A stretch of DNA of 64,000 bases from Macrostomum hystrix (GCA_950097015.1 CATNEN010000031.1:744001-808000), one strand, 5' to 3'. Numbered from the stretch's first letter, positions 6,568-61,885 are shown. The notes: generated from the letters alone by a model not told the origin. Program-made: numbers and translations.

Positions 6568-9500
6568 TCAGCTGGGCTCGACATCCTCGCTATCAAGGTG
6601 ACCAACAATGGTCAGGTAGATGGTCTCAGTGCTGTCCGCCAGGTCGGTCTCAGTCAGCTGGCCCTTGACTACAGTTGCGTACTCAACTGGCGGGGTGCTC
6701 TGCAAGTGAACGGTTCAGCGACTCGGTTGAAAAAACTTTTTTACAATGTTATAAGCATCTATTGAACAGGGTCACGTGTTCCTAGGTCCTTGAGAGGTCA
6801 ACGTGTTTGCCCGTGGCAAGGTCCCTGAGCTCGACTCCGCAGTGAGGCGCAGCCGTCTTGTCGTGCAATATGCACCCCTTCGGGCCAACCTCCGAGGCAC
6901 AGTGAAATTGTACACTGCCTAACGATGAGAATTCAGGGCAGATGTACACTGCCTGCATACAGTATGTGTGTGTGTGCTCGGGAGTCAGTGGAATAGGCAG
7001 AATTGCCTGTCGCTTGCTGAGGTCAACTGTCCACCAAATGATGCGCCTAATAGCTCGTAATATAGTTTTCGGTGAAAATCAGCTGCCAGTTTTTGCCAAC
7101 GAAACTAGAGTGCTCTGTCTTTTAAACTACGGTACTAAAAGTCCATCTTCTAGTCGTTGCCTAGCCGGGGTAGTTGCCTAGCTGGGGTTGTAGCCTAGCT
7201 GGGGTTGTAGACTAGCCGGGGTTGTAGCCTAGCTGGGGTTGTAGCCTAGCTGGGGTTGTAGCCTAGCTGGGGTTGTAGCCTAGCTGGGGTTGTAGCCTAG
7301 CTGGGGTTGTAGCCTAGCTGGGGTTGTAGACTAGCCGGGGTTGTAGCCTAGCTGGGGTTGTAGCCTAGCTGGGGTTGTAGCCTAGCTGGGGTTGTAGCCT
7401 AGCTGGGGTTGTAGCCTAGCTGGGGTTGTAGACTAGCCGGGGTTGTAGCCTAGCTGGGGTTGTAGCCTAGCTGGGGTTGTAGCCTAGCTGGGGTTGTAGC
7501 CTAGCTGGGGTTGTAGCCTAGCTGGGGTTGTAGCCTAGCTGGGGTTGTAGCCTAGCTGGGGTTGTAGCCTAGCTGGGGTTGTAGCCTAGCTGGGGTTGTA
7601 GCCTAGCTGGGGTTGTAGCCTAGCTGGGGTTGTAGCCTAGCTGGGGTTGTAGCCTGCTGGGGTTGTAGCCTAGCTGGGGTTGTAGCCTAGCTGGGGTTGT
7701 AGCCTAGCTGGGGTTGTAGCCTAGCTGGGGTTGTAGCCTAGCTGGGGTTGTAGCCTAGCTGGGGTTGTAGACTAGCTGGGGTTGTAGCCTAGCTGGGGTT
7801 GTAGCCTAGCTGGGGTTGTAGCCTAGCTGGGGTTGTAGACTAGCCGGGGTTGTAGCCTAGCCGGGGATGTAGCCTAGCTGGGGTTGTTGCCTAGCTGGGG
7901 TTGTAGCCTAGCCGGGGTTGTTGCCTAGCTGGGGTTGTAGCCTAGCTGGGGTTGTAGCCTAGCCGGGGTCGTTGCCTAGCTGGGGTTGTAGCCTAGCTGG
8001 GGTTGTAGCCTAGCTGGGGTTGTAGCCTAGCTGGGGTCGTAGCCTAGCTGGGGTTGTAGCCTAGCTGGGGTTGTAGCCTAGCTGGGGTTGTAGCCTAGCT
8101 GGGGTTGTAGCCTAGCTGGGGTTGTAGCCTAGCTGGGGTTGTAGCCTAGCCGGGGTTGTAGCCTAGCCGGGGTTGTAGACTAGCTGGGGTTGTAGCCTAG
8201 CCGGGGTTGTAGCCTAGCCGGGGTTGTAGCCTAGCTGGGGTTGTAGCCTTGCCGGGGTTGTAGCCTAGTATTTAGAGAATCGGACTTAAATGTCGGCGGT
8301 TCGATGCCCCGACTCAACTGGAACAATTAGTGTCCTTTAGCAAAGCACTTAACTCTGCATTGCTTCAGTTCACCCAGCTGTTAAATGGGTACCAGCATTA
8401 GCTGGGATAATTGAGGGTGGTTGTGGCGTCCCACCAGCCCATCGACTGTACAGCCGTACGCAGCCTTCAGATGCGCCACGCAATAGCTGAGGCTGTGACA
8501 TCGGCTGCATCTGGCCCAATTGGGACAGGTGGAGTCAATTATTATTATTGCTTTATGCACCCAAAGTGAAGTAGCCGTAATGACTCACTTTATGTAAGAA
8601 CACATGCAAATAATCGGAGCCACACGAGTATAATAATAATAATAAATTTCTGTTTGTTTGCCAAACAGAGGGTTAATAGGCTACCGTGAATAAGTTATGT
8701 GTCCGCATGAACTCGGTCTCCGCGTCCGGCGAACCACTTCGCTTTCGAGTCATCGGACTTGGCGTTTCAATCCGACCCGCGCCGCTGCCGTCCGAATTGC
8801 TGCCTGCAACTTCGCGGCCGCCAATAAATCGGAACCAGAGCCGCAGGAATATACAATTGACCGACACCAGGACGACACCAAAGACCAGCCCCAGTGCCAG
8901 CAGAGATCCGAATGAGGCGAAGAATGCTCCACCCGCTGGGCTCCCGGATGAGTGCGCGGCTTCAAATTCAGGTTCAAGTACTATCGGTAATTTATTGCAA
9001 ATCTACTAGCCTGAATTATCCAAGTGCTTTACAGTATATGTACTTCAAATTTAAAAAAACATTGCAACAAAATATAACAATACTTTACGAAGACTCACAT
9101 GGTGAGGCATATCTAGAAGTAGTAGCCACTGATGATTTGACTTGAAATATGTAGTCATTGTCATCGCGGAATTCCGCAAACTCCTGTGTTACTGAGCAGG
9201 TAATGTTGGCCGTCAGAGAACGCTTGTCGATTTCAACCTGAACCGAGTGCGTGCCGAAGCGGAATCCATCCGAGTTCAATGAACTATTCGAGACCACCGG
9301 CTGAAAAAACGATTTAAAAATGGCATCTATTGGCGATGCATTTTGAAACGCAAAACAGGTTCAAAGGGGTTTGTCGTTTTGAGCTCACGTATCGAATTCC
9401 AGAGTCGGTGAGCAGCGAGCAGTTCACCCGCGGGCTCGGGTTTCCATCGGTCACATTGACGTGAACAAGCACCGTGTTTCCTGACATTGTTGATCCTTTC

Positions 9501-12500
9501 AGATCCACCTGGGACCGGACTGTGACGCAGAAATAAAAAGGAATCAACATGTGCTTTTATGTTGTAATTAAGTAATAATGAAGTTGTTATGAAGTACGAG
9601 TAATTATTACTTCTTGTTCTACGAGAACTCTCACAATCAAACAACTCAATGAAGGCTCAATATGACCGGACTGTCAGGCATAACAAAAAGCCAAGTCTCA
9701 CTTGACCATCATTTGGTAGCCCATAAGATATAATAGTAGTCTGTAGAACATCAAAGCTTCGAGGAAATCGCCTAATTATCTATGATACATATAATAGACT
9801 CAACTTCTCAGCTTAGAAAGCTCCCAATTTCTCAGCTTACCAACGATATTTGGCACTTGGAAAACCTTTGCGTCTGAACTCGCTCCTTGAAGCTTTGATG
9901 TGCACGATATAGATTTTCCGTTTGTATCTGCATTGACGCCGAGATTAAACTCAGAGACGAGGCTCATTTTGTGGCTGCTGGTTGAGCCGTTCAGCAGCTT
10001 CTGTCGATTAAACGATCAATTTTTTTATTACGCTTTTTGCTGATTTGGATTTTTCATTTTCTATGACTTTATAAATCAAGATCGAACGTTGATGATCGCA
10101 ATTCTTCAGGTACTAGTATTTAGAATGTTTTCATGAAGCTACAAATACAAAAGGAGAGGAGTTAAAAATGCAGTCACTCACTTCACATGTGGGAAGCAGA
10201 GCAAGTCCTACAGTATTATTCTTGTTTTGCTTCCCATCCGTCACCAGCCTGCAGGTGTGGCTTGGGATACTAGGACGCGCATCGTTTGTGATGAAGCTGA
10301 ACCGAAACTCTGTTCCTACGTTGCGTGGCTCGATGTATTCTCCACTTGACTTAGCTGAAACAGGTACAAAAAGTGTCGCTAAAGTAAATGAACGAGAAAA
10401 TTAAATAGTGTCGTAATGAAAAAATTTCTTGGCTGTTCAGCTCTGAGTCGCTTGCAGTCTGCAGTCAAAGAAACAGTGACGCACCAATGAAGCCATTGAC
10501 GAATGGTTTGGACCACAGAATATAGAAGCCGTGCTTCTATCACATTGACGAATGGTTTGGACACTCAATATTTACCATAGACAGCGTGCAATAATGCTCC
10601 AGTTAGCGTGCAATAGTACAACATATTAAAGAAGCTACATTGTGTATTCTGTGGTTTGGACACTAGCTGAGACAAAATAATGCCAGGATTTACCATAGAC
10701 AGCGTGAAATAATGCTCGCATGCATTTTGTTGACAAAAATACAATTATCCAACCGTCAGCGTGCAGATAATGTTGAATTATTGCACGCTAACTGGAGCAT
10801 TATTGCACGCTGTCTATGGTAAGTATTGAGTGTCCAAACTATTCGTCAATGTGATAGAAGCACGGCTTTCTCATGCAGCTACGCCATAGATACGAGTGCG
10901 CGAAGCGCACTCAAAAGCCGTGCGCTATCTCTCCATTGCTTGTCTATAGCACGGTTTCGTAGGACATAGTCTATGTTAGTCTGGTAATAAAACTATAAAA
11001 CCTTCATTTCATACCATAGACATAGGTGTATCTACTATATACATACACTTTTTTCTGAAAAATTAATTTTAGCTGGCCATGTTGGGTCGCCGCCCCCACA
11101 TCCCGGAACGGCACTGAACACTACCATAGACAAAACGATAAGAAATCAAGAAAAACTTAAGGACGGCATTGTTGCACGGACAGAAAAACTATGTATCTAT
11201 AGTTACATCATTGTACACTTTTGGAGGGGCTTTTTCCCAGCCACCAATGAAGCCTGATTGTTGCACGCCTTTACTGTCTATGTCCCGAACCCCAGCGGCT
11301 CGTCTCGCTGTCTTACAGCCTTCCCCAAACTAAGTTCTCTTGCTGCCCTAAGTCAGGCGGTCTACTTTTGGACCATAGACATTTCGGGCGTGCACCAATC
11401 GACAAAATAATCGATTGCTGCACGCCCCGCGAGACCGCTGGCTATATCCGCTCCCAGGGACAACTAAAACCCTCGGGACGCGAAACGAGCCAATTCATGG
11501 CAAAAAATCTGAGGGGCTCGCTTAAAAGTATTGTTCTATGGCTTTTTCAAGTCTTCTCTGCTATCAGGCATTAACGGTTAGATTAAATATAAAGCGAGTA
11601 AAGTAAATATAGTAAAGCGAGGCAATGTCAAGGCACCGAAATCGGTGTATGCAGTTTAAATGCACGAATCAGAAAGTTGGGTGAGACAAAAATTCGAACA
11701 GACAGGTCTCCATCTTTATCTAACGTAAACAAGTAAACGTCTTCGTTCAGAATAGCTGTGTTCAGTGCATGTCGAGATACGACATCCGAATTTTTCACCT
11801 CAGCTCGAAAACTTTCCCATGCCGGCAAAAAATCAAGCAGCTGAAAAGCGTCCATCTCATCGATGTCGCCGCACCTCGCGTCAGAAAGAACACCGCGCTT
11901 TTCGGCCTGTCGGTCCTGGTCTAAAAAAAGAGTAAAAATAAAAGTAAGATAATTGTGAGCTAAAAAATCGATATAGACGATAAGTGTTGAGCAATCTTTA
12001 AGTTTCGTACCTTGGTTCTGAACAAAACACGAGCTAGGAACTCCATTAAAAACAGAAGGAGGATTAATTGGCCTTTCGGTAGAGTTTTTCTTGACCATTG
12101 GAGCATCGCTTGGCCAATGCTTTACGCACACGCCCATATTGTCAGTCACTCTCTAAAATTATACATTTTGGGTTTCAAGTTGTTTGGACGAGACTGGCAT
12201 GCAGAATTGAAGCGGAATTATGCAGCAGTAATGACAGCAAATGATCTGGTTTCTTACCTGGAGAATATTTGGCAGCGCCTTTCTCCATCGCTCTCGCTCC
12301 TGTGGATCTCTGGGAAACGCAAATATCCGTGTTCGAACGGCTTCAGAGTTGTAATTTGACGAGCACGGAAATACGCTGCACTTTCTTGGCATTTCATCAA
12401 GTGAATAAAAAATGCTTCTCTTGGTATAGTTCAGCTTAGCTTCACTGCTGGCCGCAGCTAAAGCAATTTTAATTTGCTTGATAGCAGAGAAGACTCGAAA

Positions 12501-14034
12501 AAGCCATAGAACAATACTTTTAAGCGAGCCCCTCAGATTTTTTGCCATGAATTGGCTCGTTTCGCGTCCCGAGGGTTTTAGTTGTCCCTGATCCGCTCCG
12601 TGAGACTGATTGTTGCACGCCCCAACTGTCTGTGGTCCAAAAGTATACAATGCCAGTGATAAACGGCTACGCGCCCTCGGTTAAAAACATTGCAGCACTC
12701 ATAGCCGTTTATTACTATATCAATGCTTTCCATAGCTGTTTCAAATTCGCCACCAGAGCACTCAAGCTGCAGTTCTAGGTGCAAACCTGAACACCGAAAC
12801 TAGCGATCAATTGAGTTTTTGGAGTTAATTGATCAATTAGATTTACCAATTAACCAATTCAAATTTGCAATTGAATAGTTTCAGCTTGAGATTCTCATTC
12901 TAAAATGCTATCACCAGATTAAAAGTGGTCACAACAGCTCATAAAATCTAGCAGCCTAAGGGGCTCACCATTTCTAAAGCATCTGATGCAGTTCCATTCA
13001 AATATGTGATGTGATAGGCAAGCTATTCCTTATCATGGCAAGCTATTCGCTGCAACATGGCTTGAAGGACACAGCTTCATTGAGTATTTGTCACCGCTCT
13101 TTATAACACTAATGAGATTTCCTTCACCAGACAATCTGCGACCTCTGTGATGCTGATTACAGTCAAGAAGTTAAGAAGTTAGTTTTCATAGGCACAGAGT
13201 GGTCACAAATACTGTAAGCTGCAAATTCGTTGCAAATACATACCTACTTCCACTTGGAGCGCTATAAAGTTTAAGAACTTATCGTGAATATTTTCTACAT
13301 TTCTTCTTAGCAGGATGAACTTGGTCATCTGAAATGAAGTGAAGTGACGGTTCAGAAGAGCTCATTCGTGTGTTTTTGCGGACTACAAGCAGACCAACCT
13401 TTGTGCAGTCAGAGTACCCGCAAATCACTCTTTGCATAATCGGGCTTCTCTCACTTGTGGTGACACCGCACTGGGTGAGTGAGCTGTCGGAGGTGTTTGA
13501 GACAGTTGCTATGCAACGGCCGCCAGTCGAGTTCAGCCCAGCAGGCATTTCGTGGCTCAGGGAAATTTCGATGCCCTCAGTTGCAGCTACAAGAAATCAC
13601 AGTAACACAGCCATATATGAGATAATATTACTAACTTTGCAACAGTAGATGCACTGCTCAGTCTCTGAGAACTCACTCGTCTCAGACCTGCCGTACACAG
13701 TGACCGAAAGCACACGCATGGGGCGAGTGAGTTGCATCAGCAGCCATTGGTAGCCGAATCCGTTTGTAGCTCCGAGTGCAGCTCGATCGAGGAAGCACCT
13801 TGATCCATGATCGGAAGACTGCCAGGGCTGAGCCACTTCTTTTTTCGTGATTTTGAATCGCCTAGAATCAACACTTTCATCTTCTGCACTTGCCCGTGTG
13901 TCTGAAAGGAACAAAATTAGTACAAGGGATAGATACAAATTCCAGATGCTTTTATTTGAAGGAATGGAAAACTTACTCAATTCAAATGCGATGAGAGCAG
14001 CGAAGACGGCGCACAACACCTTAAGCAGAGCCAT
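6568..14034 (-). CDS. Receptor gene A: signal peptide, lectin-like (F5/8C-like) domain, >=3 Ig-like domains, TM, ITIM+ITSM tail
   Basis: SP exon 14034-13977 (MALLKVLCAVFAALIAFEL); exon 13901-13677 (...GYQWLLMQLTRPMRVLSVTVYG); Ig half-exons near 10370-10220, 10000-9850, 9520-9385, 9300-9100; TM exon 8959-8685 (GAFFASFGSLLALGLVFGVVLVSVNCIFL); terminal exon 6699-6568 STPPVEYATVVKG...TETIYLTIVGHLD...*. Phases match at the SP, lectin, TM and terminal exons; exons at 13.2-12.7 kb and ~9.7 kb unresolved. Confidence 0.75.
6799..7025. repeat. Copy of a ~300-400 bp dispersed intronic repeat (others at ~19430-19760, 30420-30760 inverted, 41375-41697, 53530-53735, 59575-59897, partial ~56270-56315)
   Basis: Shared core GTACACTGCCTGACGATGAGAAAGTCAGGGCAGATGTAC...GAATTGCCTC, usually with GGTCCCTGAGCTCGA. 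Confidence 0.85.
7154..8268. repeat. 17-bp G-rich minisatellite (GCTGGGGTTGTAGCCTA), ~65 copies, fused to a SINE 5' end
   Basis: Direct repeats; the last unit runs into the SINE head GGTTGTAGCCTAGT. Confidence 0.97.
8256..8550 (+). mobile_element. tRNA-derived SINE (degenerate head)
   Basis: A-box-like TAGCCTAGT, B-box-like GGTTCGATGCC, central block GCAAAGCACTTAACTCTG...CACCCAGCTGTTAAATGGGTACC, (ATT)n tail; homologous to 25778-26075. Confidence 0.85.
10497..11290. mobile_element. Cluster of nested non-autonomous MITE-like elements with (TA)CCATAGAC termini
   Basis: Long inverted repeat ~10524-10620 vs ~10778-10870; repeated CCATAGAC/GTCTATGG ends, mostly flanked by TA. Confidence 0.7.
11363..12645. 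mobile_element. MITE with ~40-bp imperfect TIRs (TACTTTTGGACCATAGAC...GGGCGTGCA) hosting the THAP element
   Basis: Inverted similarity between 11363-11401 and ~12606-12645. Confidence 0.7.
11455..12590 (-). mobile_element. Internally deleted DNA transposon with ~95-bp TIRs, 9-bp TSD (ATCCGCTCC) and a THAP zinc-finger remnant
   Basis: TIRs begin CAGGGACAACTAAAACCCTCGGGACGCG; TSD at 11446-11454 and 12591-12599; minus-strand MPRKCSVFPCSSNY...IFAFPRDPQERERWRKAL...ICCHY matches the THAP signature; no catalytic domain seen. Confidence 0.8.
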
Positions 14035-14296
14035 GCTGCCGAGGCTGAAGGTGCGAGCCGCTGTTCAGGAATGTAATCGCTTAACTGCGGTTTTCAGTGA
14101 GATGAGCTCGAAGAAACGTGTGCCATTTAAGAATATGGCAATTGTATTTAACCCTGAGTCTCCAGCATTCGCCATTGGTGGAATGGATTAGCGTCAATTT
14201 TTCTTGCAGTTTCGTAGTTTCGTAGTTTGCGTAGTTTTCGTACCGGCTTACTTCCGGTTTGTAAGCCGACCAAGCGTGCATAAGTGGCGATCATTT

Positions 14297-14346
14297 GCTA
14301 CTGCTACTACTACTAATACTACGACGACTACTACTACTACTTCTTT

Positions 14347-14411
<65 letters not shown>

Positions 14412-14412
14412 T

Positions 14413-14461
<49 letters not shown>

Positions 14462-14600
14462 GCTACTGCTACTGGTTCTACTACTACTAGTATTCAAGTA
14501 TTCTACTACTACTACTACTCTACTACTCAACTACTACTACTGCTACTACTGCTACTACTGCTACTACTACTATAACAACTAGTTCTACTAATAGTACTAC
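14297..14600. repeat. (CTA)n microsatellite ~260 bp upstream of the gene A start codon
   Basis: Long imperfect CTA tract. Confidence 0.97.
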
Positions 14601-15499
14601 TACGAAAGTAAGTAAGAATGACTGTTTTATTTGAATCTGTTTAGGCAAGGCATAATGTTATGTATTTCGAATTGCCTACGGCAAATTATCAGCATGCAAG
14701 AATCTCAAGACTAAAAAAGCACTTCAACTTTCATACATTAATAGATTAGCATCACTTAACTTTTTCGCACTGTGAATCAAACATTCCGCTTCAAATTCGA
14801 AGACACAATGCGCCCTTTTAGAACAGCATTGACGTTGATACGCGAAATGGCAACGATACTTTTAAACATAATAATTTACGCACTTGACTGCTAGTGTATG
14901 CAGCAAAAAATCTAGCCTGTTAAAATACTCCAGGTCTACTCAAACAGTAATATTCGCTGCTTTACGGGGTAATCTTTTACGGACTCATGCTCATAGCTCA
15001 AAGAAGCAATAAAAATCTGACCGTAGTTTTTTTAAAGTGCACTTTTCTAGGATAATTGTAGGAACCGTAAGAACAAAGCACCAGTACGAACATCAACGGA
15101 CACTGATAGCTGTGCAGGAGTATTCAAAGTGTTAGTGTTAACAAAAATGTCATGCAACACAAGAGTACTCTAGATAGTGAAAACACCTAGATGCTCAGAT
15201 ATGCCGGTGTTAATCGAGAATATAGATCAAGAGTATCTTGCTCATTAATTACTTTTTAAGTTACACAATAATCACAGCTAAAATTAGTAGTGAGAAGTAG
15301 TATAAACTATGTTTTGCTCCCTCATGTCTTCGATTTTGCATTCATGCTACAGGTACTTTGACTTTTTAACTGGCTGCATCAGGTATAGTGTTGGGATGAC
15401 TTTATATTCCGGGCTAATGTCAAGTAACTCATCGCAGGCTTGCAGATGTCAACGAGGACAATCGAAAGTCCTCTTCGTCAGTTCCTTGTTAATTCTCTG

Positions 15500-15850
15500 T
15501 GCCTTTACTTCATTCCTCTTCTTCTTTTTCTTCTCCTGATGCTTATGCTCCTCCTTTCTTTTTCCTCCTTCCTCTTTTCTTCCTCTCCTTCTTCTCCTCT
15601 ACTTCTCCTTCCTCTCCTCCTTCCTCTCCTCCTTCCTCTCCTCCTTCCTCTCCTCCTTCCTCTCCTCCTTCCTCTCCTCCTTCCTCTCCTCCTTCCTCTC
15701 CTCCTTCCTCTCCTCCTTCCTCTCCTCCTTCCTCTCCTCCTTCCTCTCCTCTAATCCTCCTTCCTCTCCTCTAATCCTCCTTCCTCTCCTCTAATCCTCC
15801 TTCCTCTCCTCTAATCCTCCTTCCTCTCCTCTAATCCTCCTTCCTCCTCC
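15500..15850. repeat. Polypyrimidine tract / 12-bp CCTTCCTCTCCT repeat
   Basis: Near-pure C/T strand. Confidence 0.95.
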
Positions 15851-17250
15851 TTTGGATTTGGACTGAAGCTTCTGGGCTCGGGCGGCAACTGAAATATTTC
15901 CCAGTTCAGAATGTGCAACGTCAATGCACTAATTAAGGAACGACAAAGACAATGTTCGAGCGTAAGACTTACACTGGGCTCTGAAAATGAGCTCATATTC
16001 CGGAGTCGAGCACTTGTGAACGTCTTTTCAATTGAAGCATACGTTTCCATCTTAAATGCCGATTTATAAACTTCAATGCACTCTTGCGCTAAAAGGCTAG
16101 ATCCAAAAATATCTGTATATCTTATTATCTATCTGAAAGATAACACAAGGTAAAAAAGAATAATTAGAACCGGCTCACGGGCAAGTAGGAACCGTCTTCA
16201 GCTAGATAAGTGTCAACAGTACTGCTTTCATTTAGTCCTGTCTAAAATTTGCGAATTATAATCAAAGCCTTTGAATCCTAGATGTTAATTTTTGCATATT
16301 AATTCGCAGTTCAAATGCCAATAAAATCTTACCATTAAAATCCTCCCAGTTCTGTCGGGAACTATCTAAAAATAATATTTTGTCATGAATGTTTTGGTAG
16401 GCAAAACTACCAACTGCTTGAATTGCAGCCCATCACAAGAAGTACCATGTACCATGATTCACATGTATTATGTTATATTTTCCATAATGTATATGTTGTT
16501 CTGCATACCATGATTTACATGTACCATGTTCTATTTACCATGATATAAATGTACTAGGCTCTATGTACATAATGTAAATGTACATGTTCTACATATCATG
16601 ATGTACATGTACATGCAAATCGTGATGATTGCTACTTATCAGTAGACAAGCAGGTTAGGAAACAAGTGAACTCAAGCAAAGTGGCTTGAGATTGGCACCA
16701 ACACGCACTGAGCTACAGGACATAACTATTGCACGTCAGGGATGCAAAATTTTTCACCCATTATCATGTCCACAGTCCAGTTAAAACACTTCCATCAAAC
16801 TGATTTGAATCGCTCGCCTAGGGGCTTGCCAGTCCCTAAGAGCTTACATAGGCCTCGTTGTCAGCTGTTACAGAACTCCGATCAGCAGTGCTAGGCCTTT
16901 CTCGTAAGGCACAGTCTGAAATGCAGGCATATGAAACAGAGCCACATAAAATGGTCCAGGGCGACTACTAGATGCACAATGTTGGCATACCGTTGTGTTT
17001 TTCTCAAATATTCCAGCTGTCAAAGTCTCCTCATCGTACTCAGTCTGAAGTGCCAAAAAGCTTGCGATAATGGTTCTGATCAACCGAAACTGAAATCTAG
17101 AAGCACAGCTTTGAGTGACTTACGTTTGGATCCCTATTAGCAGTCCCATGCGCCTGCGGCAGGGTGTTTTCCTCCTCGTATACCGTCTGAAATGTTACAA
17201 TGCTTTTTAGCATATACAACTCAAGCATTGAGTCTGGCATCGTTGTAGGG

Positions 17251-17764
17251 CAGGGGTAGGCAAACTTATTTGCTGGCGGGCCAAAGAGAGAGCCCAAAAG
17301 ACGACAGCGGGCCGCATTGACTGTATAAATATGAGATAGGGGAGAGATTAGACACGGGAGAGATTAGACACGGGAGAGATTAGACACAGGAGAGATTAGA
17401 CACGGGAGAGATTAGACACGGGAGAAATTAGACACGGGAGAGATTAGACACGGGAGAGATTAGACACAGGAGAGATTAGACACGGGAGAGATTAGACACG
17501 GGAGAGATTAGACACGGGAGAGATTAGACACGGGAGAAATTAGACACGGGAGAGATTAGACACGGGAGAGATTAGACACGAGTGAGATTAGACACGGGAG
17601 AAATTAGACACGGGAGAGATTAGACACGGGAGAGATTAGATACAGGAGAGATGAGACGCGAGAGAGATGAAACAGGACACTGTAGATGTCAGAAGGGGCA
17701 ACGGGCCGATTTGGGAGCTTCGAGGGCCGCATCTGGCCCGCGGGCCGGAGTTTGCCGACCCCTG
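17251..17764. mobile_element. hAT (Charlie-like) MITE carrying an internal 16-bp minisatellite (TTAGACACGGGAGAGA, ~17340-17670)
   Basis: TIRs CAGGGGTAGGCAAACT / AGTTTGCCGACCCCTG; 8-bp TSD TTGTAGGG at 17243-17250 and 17765-17772; GGGCCGC subterminal motifs. Confidence 0.92.
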
Positions 17765-18610: not shown

Positions 18611-18832
18611 CGGAATGCAGAGGAAGAGGTTTCATATTTTTCCATGTGGAAGGCAATAATTAGAGTCTTATAAAACTCTAGGTGTTATTGTTATGGTGTT
18701 ATGGTCAGTCAGAAAGCAACTGAGGTCCTCAAAATTGATTGTCTAGCCTATTTTCTCTTCTATTCGCTTCGAGATTTTAGCTACGGATCAGGAAATAATG
18801 CTAAGAGTTAAAGTGAAATTTCTGTGCAGTTT
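18611..18832. repeat. ~220-bp near-identical inverted duplication, paired with 24772-24992
   Basis: Reverse complement alignment by eye shows only 1-2 differences. Confidence 0.92.
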
Positions 18833-27967: not shown

Positions 27968-35401
<7,434 letters not shown>

Positions 35402-50620: not shown

Positions 50621-50766
50621 TCTAACCAGTGGGATAGAAGCTTCCTTCATCCATCATGCACTATTTTTCATACATTGTTCAAACAAAAATCATACTATAG
50701 AACTGTTCCAATCATACTGACATACCGGAAATTATGAATCAATTCTGCACTTTAGAACTAAAGCTA

Positions 50767-51341: not shown

Positions 51342-51499
51342 TAAATAGATTCCATCGCGTCAGAACGCAACAACAGCTTTGATCCGCTTTTTATTGATGT
51401 GATCTAATGCGTGAAATTCACAATCCAGCCAACGGTTCGCACTATGCCATTTGATATGCAATGTTCGCAATAAAAAAATATATCAAAACCGCAATACTC

Positions 51500-53470
51500 T
51501 GAAGTAGCCTTGAGTTGGGAGAGCATCAGGTCGAATCTTCATTTTGGTTCGACAACTGCAAAGATTCGGTCAACAATGGAGATGTCAGTTAAGGTAAACT
51601 ATAGCTAAACTATTAAGCTAGGCTATAGTTAGTAAAGTATAATAAGATTAACAGTTAACCTGAGCAGTGTTTGTATAAACTGATATCGGTACAAAAAGGC
51701 CTGAAGGCTCATTCGTACCGCGTATGCCGTTCGTGAGATGCATCGTAGATTGCCCTCCGATTCAAGGCTCTTCATGCACTCGCGTTCCCTCACCTGAACT
51801 TAGAATCATTGCATTATGCCAGTAGCATGAGCATCAAGAACTCACGCTGCTGAGTTCTGGTGCCTCCTCCTGCTCTCTCTCTCTCTCTCTGCACCGCGCG
51901 CCCCAAAGTCAGCGAACTGCGAGGGGCGGGGACGTCAGAGACGCCCCAGTCTGCGAAGGAGATGCAGCACCGCCGCCGTGTCCGTGAGGATGTCGGCTCC
52001 ATCACTAGGCCGAGCCGAGTCGCCTCTGGGGCACGTGCGGAGGATGTGCTGCTCGGTGTCCGGGTTCCCGCAGTCCGGGCACTCGGGGTCATCGGACAGT
52101 CCGAGACGGTGGCGCGTGGCTGCTGCGAGGACGCTGCAACCCGCGCGCAGTTGGTTGATGAGGACCTCGTGCTTCCTCGGGAGCGCAGGAAGGCGAGGCC
52201 ACGAAGTGCCGCGGCGGAAGTCGAGGTCTCATTAAGCTCTGAGCCGACGAAGGTGGGCGTTGGCGGCCGACAGGGTGATCGCCCGGGCGCGCTGATGGGC
52301 CGTACAGAGGTTAGCGGCCCGGTCAGCCCGTTCGTTGAGCTCGATGCCGCAGTGGGCTGGGACCCAGGTCAGCCGGATGCAGGACCCGAGCTGGCTGGCG
52401 GTAGTCCAGATTTCCGATAGCGTGGGTTCGCCAGAGCAGGGGCCCCTCGCTATGGAGAGGATGGCCGCCTGAGAGTCCTTGAAGATGTCGATAGGCGAGG
52501 GCTCGCGTCCGGGGCCCGTGTCGATGAAGGTCCGGAGGGCGAGCAGGATAGCCTGAAGTTCGGCCTGCGTGCTACTGCAGATGGTTCCTGCCGCGTCGGT
52601 GACCACCCGGCCCCAGCGCGGCGTGATGACGATGGCCGCACTGGTTCGGTTGGCAGTTCCGCCCCGGACCGAGCCGTCCGTCCAGGCTGAGTTCTGGAAG
52701 GAGCCGCGTTCTGCCAGGTACTCCGTCGCTGCTGTGCTGCGGAGGCTTGGTGGTTGGTTTCGGCTGCAAAGTTGCGCTAGGCTGAGGTCGAGGGTGATGT
52801 CGGCTCTGGGCTCCCAGGGTGGGAGAGGCACATTGGCGTCCTCCCTGGGGAGGCTATCGAGCAGGCCATCGCTGTCAAGTTCCTGGCTGACTCGGCGCCA
52901 GCAACCCCGAAACTCACGGTGAAAGTCCAGCAGATGTCGTCCAGATTCCGCTGGTGTCTCTGGTAGCTCTCGTAGGCCCGGTTCTTAAGGCGTGGGGTGA
53001 CGTCCCTCAGAGCTATCTGGCGGGTAGGCGTATTCGCCGGAAGGCGGAGGACCCGTTCCCTGAGCATGGCGCTCCGTTGGAGGATCAGGTGTCCGAAGGT
53101 CGGAAGGTCCGCCACGGCGAGCAAGTCTTGTGTGTGGGTCAGCTGCAGACAGCCGGTAATGATTCGGGCGCAGCTGTGCTGCTGTCTGTCGATGAGGAGC
53201 TTGGTGCTTGGCGCCGCGAAAGCTCCCCAGACGCCGCAGGCATAGTCTGCCACGGATCTCACAGTGGCGATGTAGGCCATCCGGAGGATGTTGCTGTCGG
53301 CCCCGGCTGCTCTCGTGGCGAGTGCAGCAAGCGGTCGTCGGCGGGCTGCCATCTTCTTGCGAATATTAGTGGCCTTCTCCTGCTGCTGCCGCTGCTGCAG
53401 CAGATTCAGACGGGCAACTCGCAGCTGAATGGCCACCAGCTTGAAGCTCAACCGCGATCCGCTCAGTTGA
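51500..53470 (-). pseudogene. Relic E: 3' fragment of a gene-C-type receptor (post-TM tail exon plus downstream flank), split by a LINE
   Basis: KLVAIQLRVARLNLLQQRQQQE | EAPELSS + GTGAGT matches gene C QLVAIPLRVARLNSQQ...EDASELNS + GTGAGT; ~51525-51580 matches ~27500-27555. Confidence 0.8.
51875..53376 (-). mobile_element. 5'-truncated I-group LINE (RT C-terminus, RNase H, CCHC; Ingi/Nimb-like) with (GA)n tail and 8-bp TSD
   Basis: WTDGS, TQAELQAI, DSQAAI, WVPAHCGIELNERAD (RNase H); CPDCGNPDTEQHILRTCP; TSD CTCCTGCT at 51867-51874 and 53377-53384; frameshifted. Confidence 0.92.
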
Positions 53471-56400
53471 AAGCAAGCGTTTATTTGTGAGAAATACTGT
53501 TGGCTTAGTTAAGTGGGGTAAAGGACTGTATTGAGCGAGGACAGTGAAGTAAACACTGCAAGACGATGAGAAAGTCAGGGCAGATGTACACACTTATCCG
53601 TGAGCGTATCCCTGCGTACAGTATCCGTGTGCGTGTGTGCTCAGGAATTAGCGAAATGGGTAGAATTGCCTCACCTCGCTGGCTGCGGGTCTAGCGTCAC
53701 CAAATGATATGACATTGCCCGCAGCCCTTCTGCAAATATTTTTAATTATGATTTTGATTCCGATATTCCAATTTGGATATTATTAATTATTTAGTAATTG
53801 TTGTTTAACCTCGGCAATAAAACCTCGACAAGCAAACTTAGACTAATAATCCTCGGCTATCAAACAGTTTCACAGCAAAAATTGCGTGAATTCCGGCTCT
53901 GCGTGAGCGTTGCCTGAAGCCTGAAGACATGCCTGATTACAGTTGGTGCCACGAAAGGCGCAACTTTATAGTTTTGCTTTTAATTGCACTGGAAAATTGC
54001 ATTGAAAATTGCACTTCAGGCTGGTATATTTATTTATGCTTTCATCAAACGCAACAAATCGATTTCTTGAATAAATGGCTACGCATGTTATAGCTCGTTT
54101 TTCTCATTACTTCATTCGAAATCAACTACAATAGTGCAGTGCTGGCACTCAGTCTCCAGTCTCACTTGATGCACGCGAAACAGCTGGGAGACAATTCACA
54201 AAAAACATAATAAATACTCGTAGTTTGATGCATGCAGTACAGCTCAGAAAGATTATATCAGAAAGTCTGTTGTTTTTATTAAAGTTGCCACAAGCATCAG
54301 AATATTTCGCATATGGAACGAGAAATCTAGAATATGGAAGCAAAACTATTGGGAGTTCATGGCTGGCATGCACACAATTTATTGGGGATAACTAACTCCT
54401 GATAATACGAGCTCGAAGAACAAGTGATTGAAGCCTTTTGGTAATTGTAAGGAACAGGAATACGATTGAAATTTTATTAAGCAAAGCATAATATGATTAA
54501 AAAATCACACACAGTTTTCAGCTCACTCTACAAACAGTTTTTTAGCTTTATCAGCACAGCAAAAAATGGCTACTAGTTGAACCAAGTCTCATAACCTCGG
54601 TCGCTAGGTATAAGTTATCACCCACTTTTTTAATTTATTTTGGCCGGGAACGGCTGAGGACTCGTTTATTGGCCGAGGCGAAGCCGAGGCCATGAAACGA
54701 TGTCCGAAGACGTTTTCGGCCATAGATAAGTCAAACAAGTGGGTGATAATGTATTTATTCCACAGTTGAAGCCAGATAATTGTCACCGGACCAGATAAAT
54801 GTTTATCTGTCCCGGCCAGATAAATTTCAACGGCCAAATAAATACATTTATCTGGTCTATGGGCCAATCCAACTGGGGAATAATTAAAATTCAGAGTCTA
54901 ATAAGTGCTAAGTGCGGCACTCAATGTAATTGACAGACACGTTTTTATTTAAATTTCTTTTTTCGAATTTCGGCAGTAAAAACTTTTCCATCCTTCCGTC
55001 CTCCAATGACAGTTCTGCAGATCTCATGAAAAAGCAAGACACTGCGAGCTTGACGAAAGTCAGTTCACGTAAGTCCCAGTCGGTCCTCCGTCAGCATATT
55101 CGTACATGGTCTGAAATGCGGAAAAGACCAGACATTGTGGAAGCAGATGTAGGTCGCATGCGGAAATATGTACCGACAAAATGAGCTTCCGTACTCACGT
55201 TCGGGTCTCTGAAAGCTGTGGCAGGTGCCAGTGGTGGCTGTGAAGAGTTCTCCTCGTAGTAGATGGTCTGGAATCGCAGTTCAATGTGGTATGTCGTGTC
55301 ACAACTTGTTAAAGTTAAGGATCAAGGTAGCATATTACAAACTGCTTTGGCATCGCTAAATGCTAAGACAGGAACTACGCAGTATGCATAATCTGGTTTC
55401 GTAAAAAACTGAAACAGTTCAAGACATGTGCTTGCATTGGGATCTCTCTCAGCTCCGCTAAGAGGCATGCCAGGTCTCACTGAGTTCAGCTCGCTTGGCA
55501 TGCTCTAAAATGTCAGTGGAATTGAACCATGAGAAGGGTGATAAAAATGCCACAGAAATTCTATGAAGACAGAGCTTAGACCTACAATTGGATTTCTGTC
55601 AGCTGGCGATGAAACAAGCGGGATTGCTGCCGGATGACTTTGGGATTCCTGAGTCGCAGCAGCACAGGAGCAGCTCCGCCTCCAGACAGAAATCGAGACA
55701 ACGACGCCAAGCACGATTGAGAACAGCACGGCAGCCACCAGCAGGAGTCGATGCTCTGGCACTGAAGCGTCAGATTTGACAATCACAGAGTAGATTCCGA
55801 GCATTCCGATCCTCTGATGGCGCTGCTCCACGGAACACGAAACATTGACTGACTGCTCAGGCCTTCGCAAGTCGAATACTGTGTGGCGACGACCAGTTGA
55901 TGTGGGGTCACAGTTGCAGATGCTCACATTCTTAAAAAGTGCGATTCGTTGTCCTTTAAATTTGATTGAGTATCAGGCATCTCAATGAAATGATTTGGCT
56001 CACATGCCGGGTCCCAGAGCTCGTGAGCAGCGAGCATTTCATTCCTGATATCCAGCCCCCTTCTTTCACACGGATGCTGATGACAAGCAGTGTTCCCGAG
56101 ATCCTTGAGTCGGACAGATCCAACAAGTCCACTGCGGAATGAGCTAAAATGAGAGTTGCTTTGACATTTGGTTTGATAGGACTTTTGATCTCATTGTTCG
56201 GAGTATAGATTATGGCTGCTAGACAAAAGACAAACAAGCGCTTGTGTTCGCCGAGAGGAAACAAAGCTTGGCGGCTTGTCGCACAATTTACGATGAGAGC
56301 CAGCTCCCTAAACATAATTGGATTGTATACTGTCTTTTAATGAGAAAGTATGGCAGATGAGTTCACAATGAGAAGTGAGCACATCGGCATTTGTGTGTTC

Positions 56401-57849
56401 GTGTTTGTATTGTGACGTACAAGCCTGGGAATCTAAATTGCTATGAAAATAAGGCTGCGTCCCAATTAGTGGTTAGACGAAGGTCAGAACTCAGTCAGGA
56501 TAATGAGAGAGCAGTTGTATTTCTTGAATAAAGGAAAGATTCGTTACGAATGAGGGGCAACACTTATAAAGCTTTGGGGAAACATTAAATCTTTAGTCTA
56601 TGTCCAGGGCGCGAGTATTTTTAAGACTGAGACTGATGTCAGTTTGGGTATCTGCGGAATAAGCAAAGTTTTCTCTTGCTGGATGGAGGTCTACTGTCAC
56701 GAAATGATACGCCACTGCCCACAGCAAATGCTGATTAAGATTTGAGACTTGTTCGAGTGTCTCATAAAGTCCGATAGACCTATTTGCAAGCGTAGAAGTA
56801 GAAACTCTCCATTGAGTCTATCTTCAACCAAGTGACGGATGGACCAGCCAAGAAATGTCCTCAAGGCCAAGACCTAGTCACGCGTAAGAGTTTTCCAGGT
56901 TCCTAGACCCTGACACTGGGGCAAGAGCTTACTCAAAATTTCAATCGATATCTGCAGCAAAGCACCACAGGCGAGAACGAAACGACCGTGATGGAAATTA
57001 CAGACTGCGACAAATAACCAGCTGCTACACAGATGGATTAGAGAGCCTCTTGATTGCTAAATTGTCCCAACAGGAGCGCACTCAACAGAACGTTAATGGG
57101 CTGCCGGAGTACAACTCCGAATGGGGCTCGACATCAGCCAATTAAGAAGACACTCAAGACAATCAAAAGCGTAGGTCATAGGAAAAAAGTTTATTGCAAG
57201 GAGATTTTTGTAACAAATTCATTTGTCGAACGGATGTACTTTCAAGGGGTCTCAGAGAGTGCTGACGCATGCGTCAACTGACCAAGGTCATGACCGAAGT
57301 TTCCATATTGTCAATACTTCGCCCTTTCTATCTGCCTCTGTGTCGGTTTTTGCGCGCAATCTTACTCCGCTTTATCCTGTGTCCCTCCGTCTGTTTAAAT
57401 TCTTGAATAGCCTTTATTTCTCTCTCGTCTTGGATTGGCTCGATGTGCGTCCTTTTCTCACTCTCACCCTCCTCCATTCATCTCTTACCCAACCCCAATT
57501 CTCTTACCCTCCAGCCCCCTCAGTATTATTATTATTAAATCTCGTGTTATATAAATAAATGGACTCTCGGCCTAGGGGCTTACACACGCTCTTCCTATAC
57601 GTTTTCAGAGTCGTACATTCGGTCTCTGACTGCAAAGACAATCTATTGCGGGATATCCATGGAAAATTATTAAAAATATCTAACAGAAAACAAGGTCCTT
57701 TAAAAAGAATCATGTAATCTACAATCGAATGAACTAGTTAATTGTTACGATTAGATAAGCTAGCTAACCTTCTCTGCAATCAATTGAATAATCTATGAGT
57801 ACTCAATATCGAAAAAAGTAATTTGGCAATTATGTCGGAATGCGCTCAC

Positions 57850-60800
57850 GCTTAGCACTACTCATACACGAAGTACTTACGTAACTGACTGCAGTCAATC
57901 GAATGCTCGGTACGGCTGAGCACATTCTTGCCAGCTGCAGTTTGATTCACCTGGCAGACTATCAGGACATGGCTTGTAGCTTGGCATTGCTGCTGTGAAA
58001 TCTCGAGAATCGTACCATTTTCAACTGGTAAAAGTTTCGGCACTGACCCAATGGATTCACTCTGCAAAGTTAGGGTCGCTCTCTCGGTTTCCGAAGACTC
58101 GTGAGAGGATGGAAACGTCAGGCACGTAAGCAGCACATGAGAAAGCAGAATGCTTGAGAATTTGAGAAGAAAAGACGTGAACGAAAGTCGGGAAGGGAGC
58201 AGAAGGCGGAAATTAGGAAGTTCTTCATAAGCGATAGAATACGCTTGTATTGACATAACAAAGCAGAGACGAGCGAATCTGACAAGGACAATAATGAGAT
58301 AGGATGATTGGCAAAGTGAACGATTGTACTGAAATATTTCAATAAATATAAGCATAACTTGTAGCATAAAAGGACAACGAATTCCAAACCTATATGAAGA
58401 AATGCACTCACTGAATTCATCGAACACATTGTACTTGGCTTTGGATTCGCTTCCGAAACTGAAACTTCCACTGACACGTGCCTTTGGTTGAGTCGATGAA
58501 GCTTGACGCTAACCCGAGGCTGATCTACCCGAGGTAAATCAATAACAGAAACTGGTAATTGGATGATGATGACAAATAGATAAGAACTATTCTGTATCTC
58601 TCACAAAATACGCTGACGTTTTGAACAAGCTGATCAGCTCTCCTTGAGCACGGGTGATTAGCGATGCACACCAGTTTGGAGCCGTGCATCGATCGACGCG
58701 CTGCGATGCGGAACGCGGACTGGCCGTTCGATTCAGCAATATTCTCTAGTGAGATGTTCTCCTGCAAAGCAGTTCGTTCAAGAATTTTGTGCTTATGCGA
58801 TTCCTAAATGCCAATAAAGCTATTGAAAACCTACAGATGGGTGTTTAGTCTTGAGTAGCAGCCAGCATTGGTACTTCACTTGAGGGCTGTCACTGACTGG
58901 GCTGACATTGACAGAAATGCCGTCGCCCTCCCAAACACTGACAGTCTGCGTTGCAGTCCATCTGCTTTCTGGCTGCTCTAAAACGAAATAAGTTTATCAT
59001 CAAGAACACGAAACGTAAACGAATCCGCCTCAGTGCGCAGTGTCATCAGGCGAGACACTGGGTTGTCTACTACGAGTATTTTTCCTCAGCCTAATGTAGA
59101 GTGCAGAATTACGGTAATATTTATTTTAACCAATCATGCGCTAGCTACTCTACTCATCCGCTCAATAGTATTTTTTTTAAATGCGAACCAAAAAACATAC
59201 AAGTACAGCATGTGATTCATTTTAACAAAAAGGAGAAACGAATCAATCAAAAGTCATGTGACTACTATTAATAGTATCAAATCATTACGTTGTTTAGCGC
59301 TGTTTTGCACTACTAAACAGAAAAATTCCGCAACCCAACCACAATGACTCCTGCAAGGCTCTGAAAGCAACCGACTTGCGCTCAATGGAGCTCATTCACT
59401 GTGCATGCGGACCTTTTCCTAAGTGCAATAGCTCGACACACTAGCGAATACTTTTTCACCTGCCCCCAAGGCATACGATCAAAGTTATTAGGACACGGCC
59501 CATGCCGCACGTCGCAACGAATGCATACAGCACACTATAAAGCTGTTTTGGAAGGGGGTCGGTGCCAGAGCGGTAAACGCGTTTGCCTCTCGCACCACGG
59601 GCCCTGAGCTCGATTCCACGGCGAGGCCACATTTATTTGGGACGCAGCCGCGCAAAGAAGGCTTGGGGCTTGTCGTGCAATTTACGCCCTTGAGGGCCAA
59701 CCTCCAAGGCACAGTGAAGTGTACACTGCCTGACAATGAGAAAGTCAGGGCAGATGTACGCACCTGTGTGAGTGTATGCCTTCGTACGATATTTGTGTGG
59801 GCGTGTGCTCAGGAGTCAGCGAATTGCCTCCTCGCGGGCTGCGGGTCTAGTGTCACAGAATGATTTGCCACTGCCTGCAGCCCTCCTGCAACTATTTTTA
59901 TTATAAGCTTTTTTGACTTACGAGTCAAACCAAAATACACTCACAACACACAATTCAGGCTAAACTTATTTATGCTTATACGAAGGGTGTACTGAAAGTT
60001 TTGAGATGCACCAAAACCAAAAAAGTCTGAGGCAAATTTTCTGTCACTAGTTTTCTATGTAGTTGCCACCAGCTTGTACAAATTTCCTCATTCGGTGAAA
60101 CCACTGCGTCCAGGCTCCAGCCCACTGTTCTTCAGGCACTGCTGAAACCACCCGCTCGAACTCGATTCTTGCTGCTTCAAGGCTCTCAAACCGAGTGCCA
60201 TGCAGTTGGTTCTTCACCAAAGGGAAGAGAAAGAAGTCGCAGGGTGCCATATCGCGCGAATATGCAGGATGCGTCACCAGCTGGACTCCATTCTCGGCCA
60301 GAAATGCCAATGTTGCAGCAGCCGTGTGCGCACTGGCATTGTCGTGGTGCAGCAGCAGGCCACAAAGTTGCGCGACCGGCGTCTGCGCCACGCTTCGAAC
60401 AGCAGCCAGCGGCAGGCACTGGTTGATATACCAGTCGGCATTGACTTACGCCTGTCTTGGAGCGCTACAGTCGCCAGGTGGCCAGCCTGGCTGAAGAAAG
60501 TCCCCACCATCTGCTTCCCGACGCTGCGGGCCCGCTTGACCTTCGTTGGAGTGGCATCATCCGGAAGGAGCCAAACTGCCGACTGCTGCTTGGTTTCCGG
60601 GTCGTACTGGTAGACCCAGGTCTCGTCGCCGGTGACAATCTCCCAGCATCGATTCGAGATGCCAGAGCCGAATCTTTCGAGCATGAATTCGCACTAACGC
60701 ACCCTCTCCGCTTTCTGGTCCTCCGTCAGGTTGTGGGGCACCCATTGGGCACATCGTTTGGAGGCTCACAGCTTGTCGTGTAGGATGGTCGTAACCGCTG

Positions 60801-61885
60801 CCGATCCAATGCCAAGAGCCTCTTTGAACTCGCCACAGGTCATTCGCCGGTCTTCGTCGATCATTCTCCGGACGGCAGCGATGTTTTCATCCGTGACAGC
60901 GGAAGCTGGACGTCCCGACCGAGGCTCGGTCATCAAGGCTGCTCCGGCCCCACTTGCATTGGCTGTCCCACCGAAAAACGGTGGCACGTGGCTTGGTCTC
61001 CAAAGGCAGCACGTAAACTTTCAACGCATTGCTCTTGTGTGAGACCTTTACGCTGGTCGTAAACTATCATGGCACGAAAGTCGCGGTTTGTCAACTCCAT
61101 TGGAGCGAGTACAGTTTGGTAGGGGGTATTGACTTTGAAGAGTGATTGTGAAAAATTGCCAAGAGCGCAAAGGCTGAAATTTATACTTAATCATTTTTAA
61201 GGAGGTAGAGTATGTACATTAAAAGGCGTGCAGCTGAGACATTTGAGTCAGCCGTATCTCAAAACTTTCAAAACGATCCTCGCACGATGTGTAATATGTA
61301 TGCATGTATAAATTCACACCGAAACTCAAGCTTCTCTGAAAGGTATGCATCTCAGAGCAATGAACGAGAAATACTCACTTCGCACGTTAATTCTGCTGCT
61401 GTTGAACACTGCCGCATTGGCACCCGAGAAATTTTGCTTCATTCTGCAGCTAATCACCTTCCCACTGTCCTCCAATGACATGTTGAAACTGAAGGAAAAG
61501 CCACCCTGGACCACTTTCTGCTAAAATGTAACAATGGTATTTCAAGACTTCTCCTTAAGCAATCGCATGTTACTTATTGGTTAGCTGATGTTGAGGCTAC
61601 AGTGATTTAAGCATTTTGTACTTGGCCTCACATTGCGTGACTCTGAAAATGTGCCAGCGAAAGTGCAGCTGACAAATGAGGCTTCAGGATTTCCAAGGTC
61701 GGTCACATTGAGGCGGAAATGTGCAGTGAAGCTGTGACACAAGACTGGGGACAGCTGCTGTACTGTTGCAGCTGGCCGGTCTACAAAGGAGTAACCGTAT
61801 TTAGCTTGTGTATGACACTTGCAATCTGTTTCTGACTGCTTATTTTAAAAGAGAGAATGCCAGTATGAACTTTTCAGTAAACTCA
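57850..61885. repeat. Segmental duplication of 39690-43685 (offset ~18.2 kb)
   Basis: Near-identical from 58235 to 61885 including the mariner; visibly more diverged at 57850-58234. Confidence 0.97.
59981..61282 (-). mobile_element. Decayed mariner, duplicate of 41781-43082
   Basis: Same flanks and same lesions, so it inserted before the segmental duplication. Confidence 0.95.

Follow-up and report, generated by a model that had tools for sequence, protein, structure and literature searches.

A Macrostomum-restricted tandem cluster of putative type-I receptors with F-type-lectin-like heads, immunoglobulin stalks and tyrosine-motif tails

Introduction

With which surface receptors does a free-living flatworm recognise microbes, mates or other cells? 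To our knowledge almost no surface recognition receptors of free-living flatworms have been described. The question is raised by a stretch of 64,000 nucleotides from Macrostomum hystrix (GCA_950097015.1, CATNEN010000031.1:744001-808000; 'the window', with positions counted from its first letter). Between 6568 and 61885 an initial annotation had noticed a tandem array of diversified genes, each apparently coding for a signal peptide, up to two lectin-like domains, immunoglobulin (Ig) domains, a transmembrane (TM) segment and a tail, and had proposed a Siglec-like immune or allorecognition complex. Here we examined how many such genes exist, what their domains are, and which function is compatible with them. 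The window contained five receptor loci with an F-type-lectin-like head, an Ig stalk and, in four of them, tyrosine-motif tails, and relatives were found only in Macrostomum. This structural reading is secure. With a probability of about 0.6 the locus is a Macrostomum-restricted tandem cluster of type-I receptors, generated by duplication, exon shuffling and remodelling by transposable elements (TEs), for which we propose signalling via SH2 proteins.

Five receptor loci on the minus strand

The window is eukaryotic DNA, rich in transposons and with several satellites. Five TM-bearing loci, all on the minus strand, are head-to-tail paralogs: gene A (6568-14067), gene B (16868 to about 23733), gene C (27968-35434), gene D (38227-46641) and gene F (55060-61780), which is either incomplete or a chimera. 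Gene A was delineated by RNA junctions and a GT-AG open-frame model, gene B by RNA junctions, translation and matches to Ig hidden Markov models (HMMs), and gene C by RNA junctions and modelling. Genes D and F were placed by the splice-aware model and HMM matches, in D together with GT-AG sites and in F together with a duplication. The splice-aware model was trained on the exons of the M. lignano protein P0006 (PAA49974.1), all 13 of which were recovered by exact peptide matching on locus L001. RNA junctions and TE masks served to correct it where it over-split exons or read through them, at 34208-33789 of gene C, at mariner sequence in D and at the THAP element of A. Family HMMs were trained for the first-half and second-half Ig exons on the window's own exons, and for the lectin domain on alignment A2. 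In a scan of the window these HMMs matched on the minus strand only and inside the five loci only.

The array, its strand and the paralogy of its members were thus confirmed; the number of at least six loci was not. Splice-aware modelling of 46.7-55 kb yielded no sixth locus, only remnants of long interspersed elements (LINEs) and RNase H. This interval and those at 35.5-38.2 kb and 24.3-27.5 kb contained TE remnants and no Ig, lectin or TM exon by HMMs or modelling. Likewise, the proposed order of parts was correct, but the range of three to six Ig domains was too narrow at its lower end. The Ig count runs from two in A to six in C, with about six in D. Signal peptides were seen only in A, C and D; none was present for F inside the window, and the 5' end of B was not located.

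RNA evidence came from Logan contigs of public sequencing runs (X5-X9) placed on the regions of genes C, A and B. All RNA junctions read CT..AC on the plus strand, i.e. GT-AG on the minus strand, and the contigs joined exons of A, B and C via such introns. The initial annotation had asked whether transcripts connect the predicted exons; in these three genes they do. Its remark that the domains are split across short exons also held, as each Ig domain is encoded by two short exons. The intron within each Ig domain is in phase 0 and the introns between Ig domains are in phase 1. This exon plan is common to the window genes and the annotated P0006 gene (13 exons, same intron positions).

Gene A encodes 549 amino acids in a clean open reading frame (ORF): a signal peptide, one domain resembling an F-type lectin domain (FTLD), two Ig domains, a TM segment and a tail. 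Its minus-strand exons are located at 14034-13977, 13901-13677, 13586-13399, 13328-13244, 10354-10182, 10000-9841, 9519-9389, 9300-9099, 8980-8685 and 6699-6568; three of these form the FTLD-like jelly-roll (13244-13901). Contigs of 1382 and 1507 nt from X5 and X8 contained the junctions 13977|13901, 13677|13586 and 13399|13328, and the loose contig end at 13244 continued straight into the Ig exon starting at 10354. This read-through demonstrated that the 2.9-kb intron with its THAP element is spliced out. The other exons have GT-AG boundaries throughout and an open frame. Within the 2.9-kb intron, minus-strand ORFs at 11631-12680 begin with a THAP-type zinc finger (MPRKCSVFPCSS...) and are probably the remnant of a P-element or THAP transposon.

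Gene C encodes 1163 amino acids on 19 exons, i.e. a signal peptide, two tandem FTLD-like domains (35220-34357 and 34208-33249, minus strand), six Ig-like domains, a TM segment and a short polyglutamine (polyQ) tail. RNA junctions were 35323|35220, 34990|34752, 34556|34468, 33987|33607 and 30846|30257 (X5, X7 and the more divergent X9). A gap of exactly 79 nt fits the sole possible AG...GT exon, 33327-33249; this exon and the exons 33069-32867, 29942-29785 and 29645-29522 were covered by RNA contigs. At 34666-34687, in a loop of the first lectin domain, the X5 and X7 contigs differed from the window by S137P, H138Y, S141L and A144T; these changes were not in the DNA run that best matches the assembly. 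Such RNA variants could stem from alleles, from different strains or from paralogs.

Gene B lacks a lectin domain; it comprises about four Ig domains and a TM helix, and its tail is built of three or four cassettes on micro-exons. On the minus strand the first halves of the Ig domains are near 23685, 19952, 19258 and 18567 according to the Ig HMM (the match at 23685 is weak), the TM exon is at about 18333-17953, and the tail micro-exons are at 17879-17826, 17186-17124, 17044-16991 and 16915-16868. RNA junctions were 18894|18566, 17953|17879, 17826|17186, 17124|17044 and 16991|16915. Contigs of genes A and B (13230-19229) were present in X5, X7 and X8 at depths of 2-14 and absent from X6. All four runs were similar in depth on a repeat at 17331-17677, so the absence from X6 may reflect a difference in stage or condition.

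This repeat, an array of (GGGAGAGATTAGACAC)n with a 16-nt unit and GC-rich arms, is situated in an intron of the gene B tail. Its summed RNA depth was about 40,000, the 16-nt unit had no Rfam match, and it is probably a high-copy element of the type of miniature inverted-repeat transposable elements that is transcribed elsewhere. Two further peculiarities were noted in gene B. An intron piece at 18615-18832 has a 218-nt inverted copy of 99.5% identity at 24772-24989, about 6 kb upstream. The Ig first-half exon at 19045-19258 contains a tandem duplication in which GGKPKPKHSCWLSTSNTKLVAN occurs twice, about 70 nt apart and in different frames. In the gap between A and B (14660-16180) low-depth minus-strand RNA contigs were spliced at the GT-AG junctions 15973|15888 and 16179|16050. 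They match no model; they might belong to a small gene of their own, or add exons to B at its 3' end or to A at its 5' end.

Jelly-roll heads akin to F-type lectins

The initial annotation had described a conserved (G/E)Y(Q/H)W(L/F)L motif as shared by all loci. The motif is real, yet restricted to three genes. A regular-expression search of the window for [GE]Y[QH]W[LF]L..L.R..R.L returned exactly four minus-strand copies, at 46090 (D), 35065 and 34056 (C) and 13755 (A). Each FTLD-like domain carries it within the longer signature WQSS...C...GY[QH]W[LF]L..L.R..R.LSV. The intron that follows the motif strand is kept in A, in both domains of C, in D and in P0006.

Which family does this head belong to? 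When the A2 profile (17 family sequences) was searched against all PDB sequences, only FBP32 (3cqo, E 4e-7) and eel agglutinin AAA (1k12, E 0.0045) were matched, both F-type lectins; the FBP32 match covered its two tandem domains. For the P0006 head AF2 returned a jelly roll with a predicted local distance difference test (pLDDT) of 70.5 and a pTM of 0.76. Its Foldseek neighbours were lectinolysin, AAA, FBP32, CBM32, the muskelin discoidin domain, SUN and APC10; against the AlphaFold DB they were FTP-domain proteins, F5/8C proteins and oyster bindin. Template-modelling scores normalised by target were 0.56-0.64 to lectinolysin and AAA, and similar for CBM32, muskelin and SUN. Structure by itself therefore settles the superfold only. 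The language-model search gave a weak F5/8C lead, and Pfam F5_F8_type_C and F5_F8_type_C_2 remained below threshold on the M. lignano relatives. Thus, the designation 'F5/8C-like' in the initial annotation had the right superfold, whereas by profile F-type lectins are the nearer family. 'CC' residues after the D motif and a CCK in A were considered as the Cys-Cys pair of F-type lectins and were rejected, as both are intronic (D 46023-45961; in A the donor at 13677 is defined by RNA).

An unusual immunoglobulin stalk

A complete single-exon Ig domain of gene B had a language-model score of 0.97 with 196 shared features to CD80-like C2-set clusters (PF08205, C2-set_2), and the family Ig profile (A3) matched nectin-4 D2 with E 0.0019. 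In Pfam searches PF08205 was exactly at its cut-off in P0003 (21.0 bits) and absent from the other relatives. The RNA-supported gene C exon 31865-31530 (modelled as 31531-31863, minus strand) gave an AF2 model of eight strands with an Ig fold at pLDDT 92.8. Foldseek neighbours were SYG-1 D2, RAGE C1, SYG-2 D4, Rst and Necl-4 with template-modelling scores of 0.63-0.69 by query. On the strength of these models the domains are predicted to be C2-set Ig domains of the nectin/Kirre type. Jelly-roll and Ig folds, which the initial annotation had expected of structure predictions, were thus both obtained.

The canonical Ig core is altered. An alignment of 12 Ig sequences has two invariant residues of cysteine only, C38 and C90. 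C38 is located in the third strand of the model (strand C), after 'P.P..H.C' and at the usual position of the tryptophan; C90 is on strand F, and strand B has no cysteine. The canonical B-F disulfide and the C-strand tryptophan are absent, with the latter replaced by cysteine in essentially every family domain. The model suggests a C-F disulfide instead, and this placement of the cysteine pair recalls CD4 D2.

The resemblance to nectin-4 D2, SYG-1/Kirre D2, SYG-2/nephrin D4 and Necl-4, in fold and in profile, raised the question whether the products are nectin/Kirre/nephrin-like adhesion molecules with a structural or contact function in cell-cell adhesion, e.g. in epidermis, gonad or nervous system, with tail tyrosines that bind scaffolds rather than signal in an immune-type way. 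PECAM-1, an adhesion molecule, also has an ITIM and an ITSM (immunoreceptor tyrosine-based inhibitory and switch motifs, respectively). However, a membrane-distal V-set or I-set interaction domain is missing, the head being a lectin-type jelly roll. Identities of 17-33% among paralogs and an exchange of tail types among genes are unusual for core adhesion genes. The family was encountered only in Macrostomum, and no orthology to conserved cell adhesion molecules was found. We consider an adhesive role plausible but unlikely.

Three kinds of cytoplasmic tail

The tails are of three kinds: a YxxV...TxYxxIV pair (A, D and the M. lignano relatives), micro-exon cassettes of the type TxY(Y)EEE (B and F), and polyQ (C). 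An alignment of A, D, P0006, P0014 and P0010 at their C-terminal ends shows the residues Y, V, S, T, Y, I and V unchanged throughout (Y..V, then S..T.Y..IV), with a spacing of 19-26 residues. The last exon of gene A reads ...VEYATV...TIYLTIVGH..., which comprises an ITIM (VEYATV) and an ITSM (TIYLTI); the P0006 tail has VVYAQV and TEYTEI. The pair [ILVS]xYxx[ILV] plus TxYxx[VI] is exact in A and P0006 and absent in B, C and F. Gene D has kept the ITSM (TLYTDI), preceded by DVYVQV, in which Asp at -2 is non-canonical. The gene B cassettes are TIYYEEE, TVYEEE and TEYDEE, each of which ends with RDPN. The acidic cassettes of B and F are on exons of 54-63 nt, and three of B's were confirmed by RNA. 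The gene C tail lacks a tyrosine motif. The comparison with ITIM-tailed receptors in the initial annotation therefore applies to A, with canonical ITIM and ITSM, and to the ITSM of D; it does not apply to B and F with their acidic cassettes, or to C.

How might such receptors signal? We favour a mechanism based on analogy and motif conservation. The head would bind an extracellular ligand, a glycan or a protein, and phosphorylation of tail tyrosines would signal that the head is occupied. In receptors of the A/D type the conserved YxxV...TxYxxIV pair might dock a tandem-SH2 phosphatase and be inhibitory like ITIM/ITSM. In the B/F type the repeated acidic TxY(Y)EEE cassettes might dock other SH2 proteins. 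In the C type the signalling tail would have been lost to a LINE-derived polyQ segment. Taken further, inhibitory members with ITIM/ITSM, putatively activating ones with acidic YEEE cassettes from shuffled micro-exons and tail-less ones could represent an independently evolved flatworm system of 'paired receptors', an analogue of Siglec/KIR/SIRP in self/non-self or microbe sensing. Its members would share an F-type-lectin head put to new use, carried on an Ig stalk with C-F disulfides. This extension is tentative, and unlikely as it stands.

Probable remodelling by duplication and transposons

Gene D is predicted to encode about 900 amino acids with a signal peptide, one FTLD-like domain, about six Ig-like domains, and TM segment and tail in one exon. 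On the minus strand the splice-aware model places the signal peptide at 46641-46560, and model and HMM together place the FTLD-like domain at 46281-46024, 45960-45773 and 45686-45611. The last exon (38894-38227) contains the TM segment and the tail with DVYVQV and TLYTDIVGH. At 46023-45961, the family's conserved lectin intron position, is a 63-nt GT-AG intron which is in frame and stop-free; for this reason it is hidden in an ORF view. A search of the RNA runs with 43000-46400 listed no run; one with gene C that admitted runs of every kind did return some.

Gene F consists of three D-derived Ig domains, with exons within 61780-57888, one unique Ig domain (it begins at 56131-56004 and is completed by the TM exon), and a B-like TM segment and tail. 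The TM exon is at 55855-55586 and the tail cassettes TIYYEEN...RDPN are at 55267-55199 and 55110-55060, all on the minus strand. A signal peptide or lectin exon of gene F was not found in the window. Self-BLAST revealed a direct duplication of 96.4% identity between 39558-43685 (D) and 57721-61885 (F), mariner included. Judged by its sequence, the Ig block of gene F is a recent copy of that of D. Sequence comparison located one mariner copy in a D intron at about 41850-43000 and a second in the F duplicate. The copies differ least in the mariner element (0.8%); their exons diverge by 1.9% (17/880) and their introns by 5.2% (75/1439). The 2.7-fold lower divergence of exons compared to introns indicates that the coding sequence looks maintained. 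The ratio of non-synonymous to synonymous differences (pN/pS) was about 0.55, from 13 changes only, a number too small for a conclusion, and gave no sign of positive selection.

Other elements have shaped the array as well. A plus-strand LINE (20106-23195) inside gene B sits between both halves of its first Ig domain, and a LINE/RNase H remnant occupies 51.8-53.5 kb. In the gene C tail, bases 28006-28099 share 83% identity over 94 nt with part of a LINE ORF remnant on the minus strand (53373-53466), and the polyQ tail looks transposon-derived. From the sequence it looks as if exonised LINE sequence has replaced a tyrosine-motif tail in gene C.

Do these insertions signify a decaying array in which only A and C work, while B, D and F are TE-riddled pseudogenes with low-level transcription? 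A LINE within B, mariner within D and F, the THAP element in the A intron and the LINE-derived tail of C are in line with this idea, as are the 5' exons missing from F and the start not found for B. Further, one X7 RNA contig (depth 2.2) has a C>T change at 13745 which converts the motif tryptophan of gene A into a stop (W72*); a null allele, a paralogous copy or a simple error might each account for it. On the other hand, all placeable TE insertions are intronic and every predicted exon is open. The D/F exons are less diverged than the introns, and the 3' exons of gene B were spliced correctly in three RNA runs. We therefore regard general decay of the array as improbable. Instead, a tandem receptor cluster that has been remodelled by duplication, exon shuffling and TEs appears to display several routes of diversification: the segmental duplication from D to F, an exchange of tails that left D-type Ig domains with a tail of the B type, cassettes on micro-exons, and capture of LINE sequence as the tail of gene C.

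Restriction to Macrostomum and possible roles

The lectin-domain profile was searched against 1.84 billion protein representatives and retrieved 13, of which 12 were from M. lignano and the 13th was a marginal bacterial match. A word-based search with full-length P0006 retrieved only its own cluster. Neither search returned one-to-one orthologs of the conserved nephrin, Kirre or discoidin adhesion genes. Apart from the marginal bacterial protein only M. lignano relatives were recovered. They are annotated merely as 'uncharacterized' or 'Ig-like domain-containing'. None of the M. lignano proteins equals a window gene in sequence; the closest agreement, exon by exon, was 64-93% and concerned gene C alone. 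By this measure the window probably comes from another Macrostomum species or from a paralogous region that lacks annotation. Among the window's own paralogs, identity is 23-33% for lectin domains and averages 17-22% for Ig half-domains, which bears out the very low similarity of paralogous Ig domains reported initially. Literature searches with gene identifiers and with the architecture FTLD plus Ig plus ITIM yielded no description of the family or the architecture.

Several results weigh against the reading as a signalling receptor cluster. Expression is low (contig depths 2-40). The models of D and F are predictions, as RNA contigs were placed on the A, B and C regions only. Gene B is without a defined 5' end and F without a signal peptide, and either may be a pseudogene; in addition, there is the W72* contig of gene A. 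Pfam detected no domain in ten raw stop-free pieces of the window, and on most relatives no family reaches threshold either; the failure on raw pieces is explained by domains which are too divergent and split by introns. ITIM-like strings are frequent by chance, and only A and P0006 have the canonical residues of an ITIM. Finally, the fucose motif HX24RXDX4(R/K) and the calcium motif of F-type lectins have been defined (PMC5712786). A regular-expression search found no fucose motif, even when relaxed, in A, C, D, P0003, P0006, P0007, P0008, P0010 and P0017, and no calcium motif h2DGx ([VAI][VAI]DG[NDS]) in any member tested. In no aligned family member is the column of AAA His52 a His. With both motifs missing, it is not assured that the heads bind sugars.

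Sexual selection and sexual conflict are well documented in Macrostomum. If the genes act in reproduction-related recognition, between sperm and egg, sperm and female tract or partners, their fast evolution would come from such selection or conflict. One structural neighbour of the head is bindin of oyster sperm, a protein of F-lectin repeats. RNA and DNA contig variants compared to the window were mainly non-synonymous (about 16 versus 6 synonymous), and four of them cluster in the gene C lectin loop. Contigs of A and B were missing from X6, one of four RNA runs, which could represent a stage or tissue without gonads; at depths of 2-14, however, this is weak evidence. Reproduction-related genes of Macrostomum do evolve fast (PMC7336406). 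Yet TM receptors with paired tyrosine motifs are atypical of gamete-surface lectins, and we view a reproductive role as rather unlikely.

Macrostomum is solitary and is not known to show natural fusion or chimerism. Therefore allorecognition is the least likely role, and a polymorphic complex like Hydractinia Alr or Botryllus fuhc/fester is very improbable. The variants clustered in the gene C loop, mostly non-synonymous, would suit it to some extent, but they may stem from paralogs in a duplicated genome, and extreme allelic polymorphism was not apparent: RNA contigs and genome differed by about 0.5-0.7% in gene A. What remains in its favour is the clustering of divergent, unusual Ig genes with ITIM-like tails, as in the Alr complex (PMC9546547).

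Thus, the Siglec-like immune or allorecognition label of the initial annotation holds by analogy only. As a guess, we would assign roughly 40% to immune or microbe sensing, 25% to reproduction or mate recognition, 25% to adhesion and 10% to other roles. The Macrostomum-restricted receptor cluster is a concrete candidate for immune-type or mate-recognition signalling in flatworms, and M. lignano is genetically manipulable.

Comparison with known systems

F-type lectins (AAA 1K12, FBP32 3CQO, lectinolysin, oyster bindin, furrowed) share with the family the jelly-roll fold of the head and the profile matches with E 4e-7 and 0.0045. Tandem FTLD duplication, as in gene C, is common among them, and membrane-anchored chimeras such as Drosophila furrowed exist (PMC5712786). 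They differ by the fucose motif, the calcium motif and a pair of adjacent cysteines, which the family lacks. Neither the F-lectin review (PMC5712786) nor literature searches on lectin-Ig receptors turned up an FTLD combined with an Ig stalk and an ITIM/ITSM tail. The Hydractinia Alr genes (PMC9546547) form a cluster of the Ig superfamily (IgSF) with signalling motifs in the tails and Ig domains without canonical residues; in contrast to the present family, the distal domains of Alr are V-set-like, a lectin head is lacking, and a function in allorecognition has been demonstrated in a colonial animal.

The Ig domains have their best fold and profile matches in the C2-set_2 domains of nectin, Necl, Kirre (SYG-1), nephrin (SYG-2) and RAGE. 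Unlike these, the family has lost the B-strand Cys and has Cys in place of the C-strand Trp, and orthology is absent. Biomphalaria FREP, CREP and GREP are likewise lophotrochozoan, lineage-specific and diversified fusions of IgSF and lectin-type domains. However, they are secreted, with the Ig part N-terminal and a fibrinogen, C-type or galectin domain C-terminal, and have neither a TM segment nor a tyrosine tail.

Siglec, PECAM-1, SIRP, KIR and LILR are type-I receptors with a C2-set Ig stalk like the family described here, and their tails combine a membrane-proximal YxxV with a distal TxYxxI/V, spaced by about 20-27 residues, as do those of A and D. These vertebrate receptors also occur in tandem clusters which diverge rapidly and in which, as in 'paired receptor' families, members with differing or missing tails are found side by side. 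A sequence relationship beyond the Ig fold does not exist. In the vertebrate receptors the ligand is bound by a V-set Ig domain, whereas here we propose the lectin jelly roll. If true, a Siglec-like logic would have been assembled convergently out of other components.

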